A stretch of DNA of 64,000 bases from Octopus sinensis (lineage: Eukaryota): the NCBI RefSeq assembly GCF_006345805.1, contig NC_042998.1:207452001-207516000 (forward strand), in the 5' to 3' direction. The position numbers and the translations under genes were made by a program. Every line of letters starts with the position of its first letter. Position 1 is the stretch's first letter. Shown in pieces: positions 36,277 through 48,698 of the stretch. The notes beneath the pieces were generated by a model. It searched no databases, was not told the DNA's origin, and saw nothing but the letters and a program-made list of their open reading frames with translations.

Positions 36277-36629
36277 TCAGTTTCTGTATTGCAGCGCTGT
36301 GTTCGCAGGGGGTTTAACTTTGATTGGGATTACTTCGACTTTAGATTTTTCAACAGGGGCCTCGGCCGTCAGCATGTTCTTTCTGATAGTAACAGTCATC
36401 TTTTCCAAGTTGACCAATTTTGGAAGTAGTTCACCAATGCTTATCGATGTGGTTCTGTTAAAAGCATTTGTTTTCTTACCAGTGAGTTGAAAATATTGCC
36501 CTTGGCGGGTGGCGTTTAAACTTGAGATATTGTACCCGGTTAGGTTCATCTGAAGTCTCCAAACGTAGGTATCATTATCGACTTGGACGAATTTTGCTCG
36601 AGTTCCATCTTGAAAGTAGTTTCGTATTC
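36277..36629 (-). CDS. Terminal coding exon, alpha-crystallin/HSP20-like domain (copy A, open frame)
   Basis: ttttattttaacag acceptor, phase 1, compatible with the 48569 donor. WRLQMNLTGY...FQLTGK...LLPKLVNLEKMTVTIRKNMLTAEAP follows the ACD strand pattern and ends with an IPI motif. AATAAA at 36118-36113 downstream. Family assigned by eye. Confidence 0.72.
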
Positions 36630-37556
36630 CTGTTAAAATAAAATAAAAAAATATATATAAAGTAATAAGTATTTCCAGGTGTGTCTGTTCCCTTCCCACC
36701 ATTTTGTTCCGGGTCAGTCCCATTCTGTGACGCCTTGAGCAAATATCGTCTACTATAGCCTCAAGCCCATTAAAGCCTTGCGAGTAGATTTGGTAAACGG
36801 AACCGAAGAGAGCCCCTCGTACATACATACATATATATATATTATATATATATATATATATATATATTTGTAAAAAATGAAGTTCGAAAATGCTGCTGTA
36901 TTATACAATTTTTAATTTTTATATATACATTATAACATGTTTCAGTTCCTGAAATGAACCTTATCAAAAAAAGTTATATATAAAAAAAGACAGCTCATGC
37001 CGTCAAACACAAGAAATTCATTATAATACACAACGGAGTCAGACATCTTAGAGGTCATGTATAGTTGATATATAGTTCATGTATAGTTGATATATAGTTT
37101 GAAGTATATGTTCAAGTGTTCGATGCAGTGGCCCACCGGTGGCGATACGTATTCAATACAAAAAACAGATCAAAGTGGTGGAAAGCGGTCAATACAGAAG
37201 ATTGATGTTTCCGAAAGAGCGAGGAATCATTTTTACCTTAAGCAATTGTGATGACCCATGGTGGAAGTTCGCTGGGTGGTTCTGTATAATATATATATTA
37301 ATCGACTATCCCCCTCCCGACAAAATGCAGGCCTTGTGCCTATAGTAGAAAGGATTATTCGTAGGTTCATAAGATGAAAATTTATAACAACAGGCACGAA
37401 GGAAAGTTTCGAAAGATTCTGTTTTATTCTCCAATTTCATACAGGTAAGAATTACAATAAAACTTTGGCATAGACAATTCTAAGATTAAAATGTAACATA
37501 CAAGTGAAAGATAATTTTATAAAGTTTAGTTCACTTGGAGACAAACATAATGGATT

Positions 37557-37944
37557 TTACAGATTCTGTCTTTGTCTATGTTGTATCAGTTTCTGTATTG
37601 CAGCGCTGTGTTCGCAGGTGTCGAGGGGGGGTTTAACTTTGATTGGGATTACTTCGACTTTAGATTTTTCAACAGGGGCCTCGGCCGTCAGCATGTTATT
37701 TCTGATAGTAACAGTCATCTTTTCCAAGTTGACCAATGTGGAAGTAGTTCACCAATGCTTATCGATGTGGTCTGTAAAAGCATTTGTTTTCTTACCAGTG
37801 AGTTGAAAATATTGCCCTTGGCGGGTGGCGTTTAAACTTGAGATATTGTACCCGGTAGGTTCATCTGAAGTCTCCAAACGTAGGTATCATTATCGACTTG
37901 GACGAATTTTGCTCGAGTTCCATCTTGAAAGTAGTTTCGTATTC
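37557..37944 (-). pseudogene. Duplicate of the HSP20-like terminal exon (copy B) with small frameshifting deletions and a longer C-terminus
   Basis: Near-identical to copy A. Single-base losses near 37737, 37770 and 37855, plus about 10 extra nt near 37620. The 3' frame reads VKPPLDTCEHSAAIQKLIQHRQRQNL*. Confidence 0.7.
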
Positions 37945-39344
37945 CTGTTAAAATAAAATAAAAAAATATATATAAAGTAAATAAGTATTTCTAGGTGTGT
38001 CTGTTCCCTTCCCAACCATTTTGTTCCAGGTTCAGTCCCATTCTGTGACGCCTTGAGCAAATATCGTCTACTATAGCCTCAAGCCCATTAAAGCCTTGTG
38101 AGTAGATTTGGTAAACGGAAACCGAAAGAAGCCCGTCGTACATACATATATATATATATATAAATACATGTGTTGGTAAACGGAAACTGAAAGAAGCCCG
38201 TCGTACATACATAATATATATATATATATATATATATAAATATATGTGTGTGTGTTTGTGTGTATATTTATTTATCTACATGTGTGTGTGCCTTTGTGTC
38301 TGTGTTTGCCCACCACCACCACCGTTTGACCACCGGTGTTGGTGTGATTGCGTTTCTATTACTTAGCGGTTCGGCTAAACGAACCGATAGAATAAGTACA
38401 AGACTTAGCAAAAAGAAAAATGATAATGAAATAATGATAATTCCGGGGTCGATTTATTCAACTGAAAATTCTTCAAGGTGGCGCTCTCAAGATGCAACAA
38501 ATAAGTTTTGTCGTATCTTGGAAGAGTCATTCTTTTCTACTCTAGGCACAAGGCCCGAAATGTTTGGGAAGGGGGCCAGTCGATTAGATCGACCCCAGAA
38601 CTCGGAACGTAGCGGCAGATAAAATACCTATTTCTTTACAACCCAATAGGGGCTAAACACAGAGAGGACAAACGGATTAAGTCGATTACATCGACACCAG
38701 TGCGTAACTGGTACTTAATTTATCGACCCCGAAAGGATGAAAGGCAAAGTAGACCTCGGCGGAATTTGAACTCGGATCGTAGCGGCAGATATAATACCGC
38801 TAAGTATTTCGCCCAGCGTGCTAACGTTTCTTATTTCTTTATTGCCTACAAGGGGCTCAACATAGAGGGGACAAACAAGGACAGACAATCGGATTAAGTC
38901 GATTATATCGATCCCAGTGCGTAACTGGTACTTAATTTATCGACCCCGAAAGGATGAAAGGCAAAGTCGACCTCGGCGGAATTTGAACTCAGAACGAAAC
39001 GGCAGACGTAATACCGCAAAGCATTTCGCCCGGCGTGCTAACGTCTCTGCCAGCTCGCTGCCTTTCTGTGTGTTCATTATTGGCATAAGAACCCTCCCGA
39101 GATATTCCAAACTAAATTAGTATAAACTGAAATGAAAGAATTACAAAGAATAAAGGCTTTCAATGGTGAAAAATAAAACATTTTCTTAAATTATTTTATT
39201 TCTTGTTTTGGCAAAATGTTAGTACAGCTGTCTATCTGAAGTGTTGACTGCGGAAACTGCAGTTTCTGTCACAATTGAGTAAAATATCTGTTTGGTCAAA
39301 TGTAATGTTCATTTATGTACATTGTTTCGAATTAATCATGTATT

Positions 39345-40378
39345 ATTACCCCCGCCTTCGCTAAAGCGGAGGTATTGTTTCAGTCGTGTTTGTTTGTCTG
39401 TCCGTGGACAAGATATCTCAAGAACAGCCGGATGGATTCGGATGAAACTTTCAGGGATGTTTGGCACGAACTGATTAGATTTCGGAATCATTACGGTACA
39501 AGACAACGATTCTGAATTATTTGTTACATTTACTTTACAAGAAGTGTTACGATCTTACGTTGACTTTCAAGTCTTTCTCTGATTATCTCCCTTGAACGCA
39601 CGCTCATGATTTCCACGTAAGTTATAGCGGCGTTGCTGTTTCCAAAGTATTATTTTTTCTCTATTATTAATTTTCCTTTTTTTTTTTAATAGAAACTGAT
39701 GGATAAAGAAATCAAACTACATAAACAAACGGAAGCAAAACCGTTCAGGAATAAAATAACACTAACATATTCAGTAACAATAATGAATTTAATTTATCCT
39801 CGATAATTTTTAGTTTTACCAATTTTGAATAAATCACTCCTGTCTAAAACCTCTTACCTACTTGACATTTACATTTCTAGCTCTGCCTTGAAGGAAGCTT
39901 TACTTCTTGGACTCACGTTTTTGTGCGCAATAATATTGTTAAACCTCCCTTAACAGCACCGTATGCAAGTCCTTTCTGTTTTTCTTTCAGGCATGGATAA
40001 ATTTTTCACTATAGACCTTAATGGTCGTAAAGACACTATATCAGTGGATAGACGAAAAAAGGCCTTCATAGAGGAAACTGTCCCTGTTCCCACTGCAGAC
40101 GACAAGCACACACAGCATTACAAACACGGCCTGCACACCCATTCCATGACTACCATTGGGATCGATCAGGTACCGGACAAAAATTCTGGATTATTTTCCC
40201 GGTTTTTTAAAACTTAATTTTTGAGAGAGGTCAGGTTCATTTCCAGTATTCCTGTTTGTGAGAGCAGTCGAGTTTACTTCAGATATTCTCATTTAAAAAA
40301 TCATCTCCGGCTAATCATTGAGAGGTCATTGGTGTTGCCTTGGCGGAGGTTTGCGCTCTCTGAGTGCTCTTGTTTTAT
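39345..40378 (+). mobile_element. HINE/DINE-1-like non-autonomous Helentron element
   Basis: 5' cccgcc...gcggagg hairpin followed by (GTTT/GTCT)n; 3' ccttggcggagg subTIR and gcgctc-t-gagtgc stem-loop ending in a T-run. Confidence 0.7.
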
Positions 40379-47295: not shown

Positions 47296-47984
47296 ATGCA
47301 TATGTATGTATGTATACTCATACACACACACACATATGATGTATAGCTGTGTGCGTGTATTTTTGCGTTTGTGCTTGTTCCCCTCCACCGCTTGACAACC
47401 GGTGTTAGTGTGTTTACGTCCCCGTAACTTAGTAGTTCGGCAAACAAGACTTATAGAGTAAGTGCCAGGCATTAATAAAATACAAAAAAAAGGACTTGTG
47501 TCTTTTCGTTCGACTAAAATTCTTCAAGGCGGTGCCCCAGCATGGCCGCAATCTAATGAATGAAACTAGTAAAAGATAAAAGATGCTGTTTCTAATTTAG
47601 GCACAAGGCCAGCAATTTTGTGGAGGGGAGGGTGGGTGTTTGTCGATAAGGTCAACTCCAGTTCTTAACCGGTAGTTTATTTTATCGACCTCGAAAAAAA
47701 AAATTGAAAATAAAGTTGACCTCGGCGGAATTTGAACTCAAAACTTATCCAATGAATTTTTTTTTACAACGTTCTAGCGATTCTGCTGACTCACTGTTTT
47801 ACACATACACACACACACACACGCTCAATTATTAACTGGATCAAAAACAAAATCAATAACCAAGCGGGATGTTATATATTGTTTTTTTAAAAACGTAACA
47901 CTCTATTCTGAGTCTCACCAAGGCTTTTCAAACTCTGTGTGTGTGTGTGTGTGTGTGTAAAATATTTTATAAAATTGTTTATAG

Positions 47985-48385
47985 ATATAGACAGACAAAA
48001 AGACAGGTGGATAAATAAATATAGACAGACAGACAGGTAGATAGACAGATACATAGATATAGACAAGCAGACAGACAGACGGACAGACAGACAGAAGGAG
48101 ATATATATATATATATATATATATATATATATATATATATATAGATATATATTAGATAGATAGATAGATAGGTAACATAGGTAGATATAGGTGAATAGAT
48201 AGATATAGATAGATATAGATAGATAGATAGATAGATAGATAGATAGATAGATAGATAGAGATCAGATAGATAGATAGATAGTAGATAGGTAGATATAGAT
48301 AGAGATAGATAGCTAGATAGATAGATAGATAGATAGTAGATAGATAGATAGATAGATAGATAGATAGATGATTTATTGATAGATA
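47985..48385. repeat. (ACAG/TA/ATAG)n microsatellite
   Basis: Direct inspection. Confidence 0.95.
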
Positions 48386-48568
48386 GATAAGTTTCTTTAT
48401 TGGCCACACAGGGCTGCACACAGTTGGGACAAGTTACAAGGTAGAGCTTTTCTTTTGGGGGAGAGAAAAAGAAAAAAAAGGTGGCGTAGGTTTTCGATCA
48501 AAAGGGATCGTAAAAGGGAAAAAAGAACAAAAAAAGAAAAAAGAAAATAGATAGATAGATAGAGTTAC

Positions 48569-48698
48569 CGTTAAAAATGGAATCCATTGATGGAAATTTT
48601 GGCATTAGTCCGTCAAACAACGATGCCGGAGTTGTGGGCACTGCCAGTGAAATAGTGAGAAGGACCACACAATAGACATAACTCTTAATCAACACCAT
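48569..48698 (-). CDS. First coding exon of putative secreted HSP20/alpha-crystallin-like protein (MVLIKSYVYCVVLLTISLAVPTT...IFN)
   Basis: gaaaATGG start context; in-frame TGA 27 nt upstream; no upstream ATG back to the candidate acceptor at 48986. Hydrophobic signal-like N-terminus ending S-L-A. Phase 1 donor gtaact. Confidence 0.78.

Follow-up and report, generated by a model that had tools for sequence, protein, structure and literature searches.

A divergent small heat-shock protein gene of Octopus sinensis with a predicted signal peptide and conserved N-glycosylation sequons

Gene structure and conservation

Within a 64,000-nt stretch of the Octopus sinensis genome (assembly GCF_006345805.1, contig NC_042998.1, forward-strand positions 207,452,001 to 207,516,000; hereafter the window), we describe a gene of two exons that encodes a divergent small heat-shock protein (sHSP). 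The protein combines a predicted classical secretion signal with conserved potential sugar sites, which is unusual for an animal sHSP. The gene lies on the minus strand, and all coordinates given here are positions within the window. An earlier note on this DNA had joined 48698-48569 to 36629-36277 to obtain a 160-amino-acid (aa) product. That reading is borne out, in that the coding parts of the two exons together encode 160 aa followed by TGA, and the product has the same sequence as the annotated O. vulgaris protein CAI9716889.1 (“hypothetical predicted protein”) and is 87% identical over its full length to O. bimaculoides XP_014775593.1, with residues 1-30 the same. UniRef labels the O. 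bimaculoides ortholog “SHSP domain-containing protein” and the O. vulgaris protein “Uncharacterized protein”. The gene comprises the following elements.

48857..48864, minus strand: TATA-box-like element TATAAAAG, putative core promoter, ~160 nt upstream of the ATG
48569..48698, minus strand: coding exon 1, 130 nt; residues 1-43 and the first base of the Gly44 codon
48568-48567, minus strand: exon 1 donor GT, AACG/GTAACT (slash, exon boundary)
36630..48568, minus strand: intron, 11,939 bp, phase 1
36277..36629, minus strand: coding part of terminal exon 2, 353 nt; residues 44-160; stop codon TGA at 36279-36277
36113..36118, minus strand: poly(A) signal AATAAA, 161 nt past the stop codon

The start codon, at 48698, has a good context (GAAAATGG), and the exon 2 acceptor, TTTTAACAG/GA, stands at the end of a T-rich tract, so placed that the join is in phase 1 within a Gly codon. 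The intron contains microsatellites, copies of a sequence resembling a short interspersed nuclear element (SINE), a reverse-transcriptase fragment, and a degenerate copy of exon 2. A third octopod, represented by the genomic contig L009, has the same acceptor, an intact exon 2, and an equivalent AATAAA-containing stretch. Compared with this contig, exon 2 shows 0.37 synonymous and 0.12 nonsynonymous substitutions per site (dN/dS 0.31), and 400 nt of the adjoining intron are only ∼58% identical. Exon 2 is under purifying selection, and the two-exon model is not a chance open reading frame (ORF). Aside from the local exon duplicate, the gene family is single-copy in the genome.

Upstream of the acceptor, the exon 2 frame has no stop for 90 codons (36630-36900, minus strand) and includes an ATG (MVGREQTHLEILITLYIFFYFILTG...), which is not an alternative start. 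The resulting 207-aa open frame at 36277-36900 was rejected, as its upstream part is a translated polypyrimidine tract. Since stops in L009 close this in-frame extension, the acceptor is a true exon boundary. There is no sHSP gene cluster around the locus; the 13 genomic PF00011 matches fall on other chromosomes or scaffolds, none of them in the window. The trimeric heat-shock element nGAAnnTTCnnGAAn has no match with at most one mismatch in 48699-54514, i.e. over ∼5.8 kb upstream of the gene, the nearest being at 54515-54527; therefore nothing points to heat induction.

Alpha-crystallin-domain homology and predicted fold

Homology of the octopus protein to sHSPs is apparent only by way of its family, because direct Pfam and Protein Data Bank (PDB) searches with the protein itself gave nothing (the PDB matches by phmmer, e.g. 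to spike proteins and PCNA, were at chance level, E≥0.26). When 1.84 billion representatives were scanned exhaustively with phmmer, three short relatives emerged, P0005, P0006, and P0008, at 27-33% identity and E-values of 1.4e-8 to 7.4e-4. All three exceed the Pfam HSP20 cut-off (23.2-33 bits vs 20.8). Two further matches in the scan, P0004 (4,767 aa, with bacterial Ig repeats) and P0007 (NACHT/LRR), were repeat-driven and were set aside, and a profile search added another relative, P0010. When P0010 was searched against the octopus genome, its best match was this locus (2e-9), reciprocally, and its second was a canonical sHSP gene (0.004).

An alignment of eight family sequences was the basis of the profile, hhalign, and AlphaFold2 runs. 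Searched against PDB, the family profile matched Caenorhabditis elegans Sip1 (4ydz) at E 1.4e-8 over positions 25-155, and all 14 of its 14 matches were sHSPs. By hhalign, the family matched two canonical octopus sHSPs aligned with human alphaB-crystallin (95.6% probability, E 1.1e-8). AlphaFold2 predicted seven strands over residues 54-136, where the predicted local distance difference test (pLDDT) values are ∼78-87. Foldseek searches with this model returned sHSP alpha-crystallin domains (ACDs) for every one of the top 50 PDB matches, at probability 1.00; the cores of HSPB1 and alphaB-crystallin aligned with template modeling (TM) scores, normalized to the target, of 0.73-0.80 and root-mean-square deviations of 2.3-3.3 Å. 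The helminth sHSP Tsp36 (2bol) is among both the profile and the fold matches. The ACD that the earlier note had read from the strand pattern is thus recovered by profile and by predicted structure, the latter through the combination of AlphaFold and Foldseek that it had suggested.

Several sHSP hallmarks are kept, namely the LP-x-x-V-(D/N) turn, L-x-I/A-x-x-P in beta9, and the C-terminal I-P-I, and the SLFDG stretch resembles the (S)RLFDQ motif of sHSP N-terminal regions. The G-V-L motif has lost its Gly. Membership of the octopus protein in the sHSP/ACD superfamily is supported by the predicted fold, by profile homology, and by the I-x-I motif.

Signal-like N-terminus and conserved sequons

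The protein starts with MVLIKSYVYCVVLLTISLA, contains SLFDGLMPKFPSMDSIF, and ends in ...ALQYRN. The features that had been read from the letters (a hydrophobic start, IPI, five N-x-S/T sequons, and no KDEL/HDEL) are all present as described, the sequons (NDT62, NLT72, NIS77, NAT82, and NRT101) spanning 42 residues. The mature polypeptide would be ∼16 kDa, without cysteine, and basic (isoelectric point, pI, 8.9-9.9). Its features map to the window as follows.

48642..48698, minus strand: signal-peptide-like segment MVLIKSYVYCVVLLTISLA; Lys5 in the n-region, 15-residue apolar core, Ser at -3 and Ala at -1 before Val20
36346..36600, minus strand: alpha-crystallin domain, residues ~54-138 (beta2 to beta9), placed by AlphaFold2, Foldseek, hhalign, and the PDB profile match
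36568..36576, minus strand: sequon N62-D-T, beta2/beta3 turn; N and T invariant in 8/8 family sequences
36538..36546, minus strand: sequon N72-L-T, end of beta3; kept only in octopods (NLT/NIT)
36523..36531, minus strand: sequon N77-I-S, start of beta4; present in octopods, NSS in P0005/P0009; Ser79 invariant
36508..36516, minus strand: sequon N82-A-T, followed by R85-x-G87, middle of edge strand beta4; invariant family-wide
36451..36459, minus strand: sequon N101-R-T, beta5/beta6+7 loop; N and T invariant family-wide
36322..36330, minus strand: I-P-I (residues 144-146), C-terminal I-x-I anchoring motif; invariant in 8/8, aligned with LPI of Sip1

We measured N-terminal hydropathy as the maximal 9-residue Kyte-Doolittle value within the first 30 residues. 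This value is 2.81 for the octopus protein and 2.8-3.2 across all full-length family members, as compared to 1.24 and -0.21 for two canonical octopus sHSPs and 0.32 for human alphaB-crystallin. The three kinds of full-length protein share an N-terminal layout of zero to one basic residue and an apolar core of 9-15 residues, ending with small residues that fit the -3/-1 rule (...ISLA/VP in octopus, MAVTYRLLLALGVVLQLAAFFPAQGNA/F in P0005, and MAVSYQLLTLVAVLLLSTS... in P0010). The signal-like segments differ in sequence between clades while retaining this n-h-c layout, and signal peptides are known to evolve in just this way, the sequence changing and the layout being kept. The N-terminal segment is probably a cleavable signal peptide, to judge from its composition and layout. 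None of the family C-termini (ALQYRN, LLYKNLI, PTVKAT, PEVHIN, and PEVKTT) has a KDEL/HDEL or like motif, and the family proteins read have no second hydrophobic segment.

The octopus protein has five sequons where shuffling predicts 1.76 (P ∼0.017), and each family protein has four or five as compared to ∼1.7 by shuffling (P 0.01-0.08). Sequon conservation is a stronger signal than sequon number. The sites are conserved in relatives, a check that the earlier note had proposed: all five are kept in three octopods, and every one of the eight family sequences has N62-x-T, N82-x-T, and N101-x-T, although identity between clades is only ∼30%. Invariant columns make up 7/10 of the sequon N/S/T positions vs 14/95 of the others, a difference for which Fisher's test gives P 4e-4, a value to be taken as indicative since the sequences are not independent. 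Judged from the alignment, the N-x-S/T sequons are maintained by selection. N82 and T84 align with Lys90 and Lys92 of alphaB-crystallin, and side chains at these positions would face outward. The invariant N-A-T-R-x-G on beta4 adjoins the groove that normally binds the I-x-I motif.

Splice junction in related genes

Transcript contigs for P0005 (L006 and L007) and P0010 (L013-L015) have both 5′ and 3′ untranslated regions and an uninterrupted coding sequence (CDS), and the genomic contigs L008 and L016 are interrupted precisely at the homolog of the octopus Gly44 codon. The phase-1 Gly-codon acceptor also occurs in L008 and L009, and the intron position is kept in L008, L009, and L016. Comparison of transcript L013 with genomic L016 gives 90% identity in the 60 nt past the junction and 37% in the 60 nt before it; just 5′ of the junction, L016 has a polypyrimidine tract and CAG (...TTTCTTCTTGCAG). 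In the relatives, then, transcripts join the signal exon to the domain exon, and the different first exon that had been named as the case to fear does not appear. A P-x-F-P/E-S motif is common to exon 1 of the octopus gene and exon 1 of distant relatives. Because the junction and this exon 1 motif are shared, the two-exon layout (signal and short N-terminal region in one exon, ACD and tail in the other) is ancestral to the family. On L008, a mariner-type transposase fragment (L008:11599-12114), with thousands of similar copies in the European Nucleotide Archive (ENA), lies ∼1.2 kb downstream of the sHSP exon.

Predicted routing and alternative explanations

We propose that a divergent sHSP has been redirected to the classical secretory pathway and is exported, a reading to which we assign a probability of about 0.65. 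Exon 1 would encode the signal peptide, roughly residues 1-19, together with the little that is left of the sHSP N-terminal region (SLFDG...FPS), and exon 2 the ACD and the C-terminal IPI. The nascent chain would be imported into the endoplasmic reticulum (ER) and its signal cleaved near Ala19/Val20, with N-glycans added at the family-invariant Asn 62, 82, and 101 and the octopod-specific Asn 72 and 77, which lie in turns, loops, or the edge strand beta4 of the model. With no KDEL/HDEL or anchor, the ∼16-kDa basic, Cys-free chain, bearing up to five glycans, would then be exported by default. Outside the cell it would most likely behave like other sHSPs, self-associating by docking of the IPI in the beta4/beta8 groove and capturing exposed hydrophobic surfaces independently of ATP, whether as a holdase or as a constituent of a secreted matrix. 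A broader proposal, that octopods and at least one other species group have a conserved lineage of classically secreted N-glycosylated sHSPs that act outside the cell as holdases or self-assemble as part of a secretion (e.g. mucus, egg coat, or saliva), is tentative and in our estimate falls somewhat short of even odds. From cleavage and glycosylation through export and oligomerization to client binding, these steps are predictions, as are the tissue and the chaperone or structural role.

Several observations weigh against the export reading, among them the exon duplicate considered below. The records with the exact protein in O. vulgaris and O. bimaculoides comprise one contig each, from the genome and not from transcripts, so that in octopus expression is presumed and the 48569->36629 junction predicted. 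At E≤10 Pfam assigns neither the O. vulgaris nor the O. bimaculoides protein to any family; both fall below the HSP20 gathering threshold, so that the PF00011 search proposed in the earlier note comes out negative for the octopus protein itself. The HSP20 domain is evidently at the edge of automatic detection, and Pfam misses both octopus proteins. Overall pLDDT of the AlphaFold2 model is moderate, at 61, with eight sequences, and with three near-identical sequences it is 36, which is unusable. The per-protein enrichment of sequons is modest. The beta6+7 arginine (alphaB R120 position), typical of metazoan sHSPs though not strictly defining, is replaced by Ile108 in octopods and by Tyr in the other clade; because of this replacement, canonical dimerization and chaperone behavior are not to be assumed. 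Together with a fixed glycan on beta4, the loss of this arginine suggests that assembly differs from that of canonical sHSPs.

Other destinations and other topologies must be weighed against export. Entry into the ER without export, leaving the protein as a resident of the ER, Golgi, lysosome, or secretory granule and perhaps an organellar holdase like the plant ER-class sHSPs, would account equally for the signal-like N-terminus and the conserved sequons, and signal-peptide ER sHSPs do exist in plants; we nonetheless consider it unlikely, given C-termini (...LQYRN, ...TVKAT, ...EVHIN, and ...EVKTT) unlike KDEL/HDEL, no transmembrane segment past the signal, and no trimeric heat-shock element near the promoter. 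Less probable still is an uncleaved signal anchor, which would make a type II membrane protein with its ACD in the lumen or outside the cell. The hydrophobic segment does lie right at the N-terminus, preceded by a single basic residue, yet its apolar core of ∼9-15 residues is below a typical membrane span, the small -3/-1 residues (S-L-A/V in octopus and G-N-A/F in P0005) fit signal peptidase, and Pro/Gly, which break helices, follow the core. We give just as slight a chance to an ordinary intracellular sHSP, cytosolic or mitochondrial, whose N-terminal region is hydrophobic and whose sequons are incidental. The N-terminal regions of sHSPs are often hydrophobic, and shuffling yields only P ∼0.02-0.08 per protein for sequon number; extracellular animal sHSPs, moreover, generally have no signal sequences (PMC4723143). 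Against an intracellular protein stand the three N-x-T sequons that are invariant at ∼30% identity (Fisher P 4e-4), the canonical octopus and human sHSPs, which have no comparable core in their first 30 residues, and an N-terminus that on direct reading does not have the Arg-rich amphipathic character of mitochondrial presequences.

A different kind of difficulty for the export reading comes from a tandem duplication of the terminal exon within the assembled gene.

35525..38150: two tandem units of ~1,310 bp, (TA)n-bounded; unit A, 35525-36834, with the intact exon; unit B, 36835-38150, with the broken copy
37589..37944, minus strand: degenerate exon 2 copy B; same acceptor as exon 2, several 1-2-bp deletions, one 10-bp insertion

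The alternative acceptor at 37944 that the earlier note had mentioned does exist, and belongs to the frameshifted copy. Splicing exon 1 to copy B would bring a stop after 79 residues (...RLQMNLPGTISQV). Copy B stands upstream of the intact exon in the transcript, its acceptor and polypyrimidine tract are identical to those of copy A, and it has its own AATAAA at 37428-37423; because the polymerase meets unit B first, this unit, if real, could be used in place of the intact exon. Units A and B align with 1,280 matches, 18 substitutions, and 17 indel events, many of the latter in short homopolymers, which suggests a very recent duplication or an assembly artefact. An artefact is a live alternative because this indel-rich homopolymer pattern would be typical of unpolished long-read sequence. 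We see a small but real chance that the main product of the gene as assembled is cut short at 79 residues, or that the gene is decaying, or alternatively that copy B is an artefact and the gene is intact. Copy A itself is intact and, in comparison with another octopod, shows purifying selection; annotators chose copy A, and the exons of O. bimaculoides and the third octopod are intact.

Relation to known systems and significance

Animal sHSPs are textbook intracellular chaperones, and those that occur outside cells reach it by non-classical routes. To our knowledge there are very few dedicated extracellular chaperones, none of them with the alpha-crystallin fold. By both structure and sequence, the closest relatives of the octopus protein are canonical metazoan sHSPs (Sip1, HSPB1, alphaB-crystallin, and octopus sHSP), with which it shares the ACD beta-sandwich, profile homology, P-x-x-V-(D/N), and I-P-I. 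It departs from them in its signal-like N-terminus, its conserved N-x-T sequons, the loss of the beta6+7 Arg and of the G-V-L Gly, its basic mature pI of 8.9-9.9, and a score below the Pfam HSP20 threshold. The genes differ too: a phase-1 intron precedes the ACD in the gene described here, whereas the canonical octopus sHSP gene examined (G000:C5:47165510-47166028) has an intronless CDS.

For routing, the closest analogy is with plant ER-class sHSPs, which likewise consist of an ACD protein brought by a cleavable signal peptide into the secretory lumen. The plant proteins have retention-type signals at their C-termini, are heat-induced, and fall into sHSP classes of plants, whereas the octopus family has no retention motif and the gene has no nearby heat-shock element. 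Because the closest matches of the octopus family are animal sHSPs, its origin is independent of the plant ER sHSPs. Our literature search found a single animal precedent for a signal-sequence sHSP, AvHSP28.6 of the cnidarian Anemonia viridis; the passage describing it gives an in-silico N-terminal signal sequence overlapping a predicted transmembrane segment, and that passage does not report sequon conservation (PMC4175457). The exhaustive scan of 1.84 billion representatives revealed no specific relationship between AvHSP28.6 and the octopus protein. Helminth sHSPs (Schistosoma p40 and tapeworm Tsp36) have been found extracellularly and have no signal sequence (PMC4723143). These have two ACDs and non-classical release, as compared to a single ACD and a classical signal-like N-terminus in octopus. 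Clusterin and other extracellular ATP-independent chaperones are unrelated in fold and ancestry, yet may offer a functional analogy as secreted, heavily N-glycosylated holdases. The literature search returned no paper on this gene, its family, or a secreted cephalopod sHSP. HSP20 matches in the Perna shell proteome proved to be ordinary sHSPs.

If the proposal is correct, it would add a new compartment to animal sHSP biology: through a gained signal peptide and fixed glycan sites, an ACD chaperone or scaffold that needs no ATP would have been put to use outside the cell. It would also offer a natural experiment on how beta4 glycans and loss of the interface arginine affect sHSP assembly, and a candidate component of cephalopod secretions. 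Such a protein would surprise an sHSP specialist. The functional statements made here are all computational.

Surroundings of the gene

The window is 39.5% G+C and repeat-dense, and contains no tRNA or Rfam elements. Its repeats and mobile-element remnants are distributed as follows.

526, 4474, 5767, 5941, 10020, 15952-16389, 18598, 26786, 28218-28431, 38749, 38966: copies of the SINE-like core
43529, 44263, 44447, 47715, 50469, 51339, 53954, 60043: the remaining copies of the SINE-like core
22614-23354 (minus strand), 23942-24502 (minus), 30650-30991 (plus), 33971-34549 (minus), 42830-43645 (plus): transposable-element remnants
24641-25679, 32115-33550, 40967-41366, 48021-48389, 60430-61190: (CATA/ATGT/ATAG)n tetranucleotide arrays, up to 363 copies
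7244-7916: tandem repeat of 24-bp period, AAAATTTTTGGTGAAAATTTTGGA, ~27 copies, open in three minus-strand frames (e.g. FSKIFTKN repeats)

The SINE-like core, GAGTTCAAATTCCGCCGAGGTCGAC, is present in 22 copies with at most three mismatches, where none is expected by chance; six are inside the intron of the sHSP gene, and some belong to tandem arrays of 184-190-bp units (44238-44605, 51681-52655, and 59791-60239). The transposable-element remnants comprise a mariner-type transposase fragment (PF01359, E 7.5e-24), reverse-transcriptase fragments (PF00078), and an endonuclease fragment (PF14529), and the last reverse-transcriptase piece listed is within the same intron. The tetranucleotide arrays account for the strong GC/AT skew seen at 24-36 kb, and numerous spurious, mutually overlapping ORFs (150-590 aa) in several frames also arise from them. 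The 24-bp repeat at 7244-7916 is most likely a satellite and not a gene.

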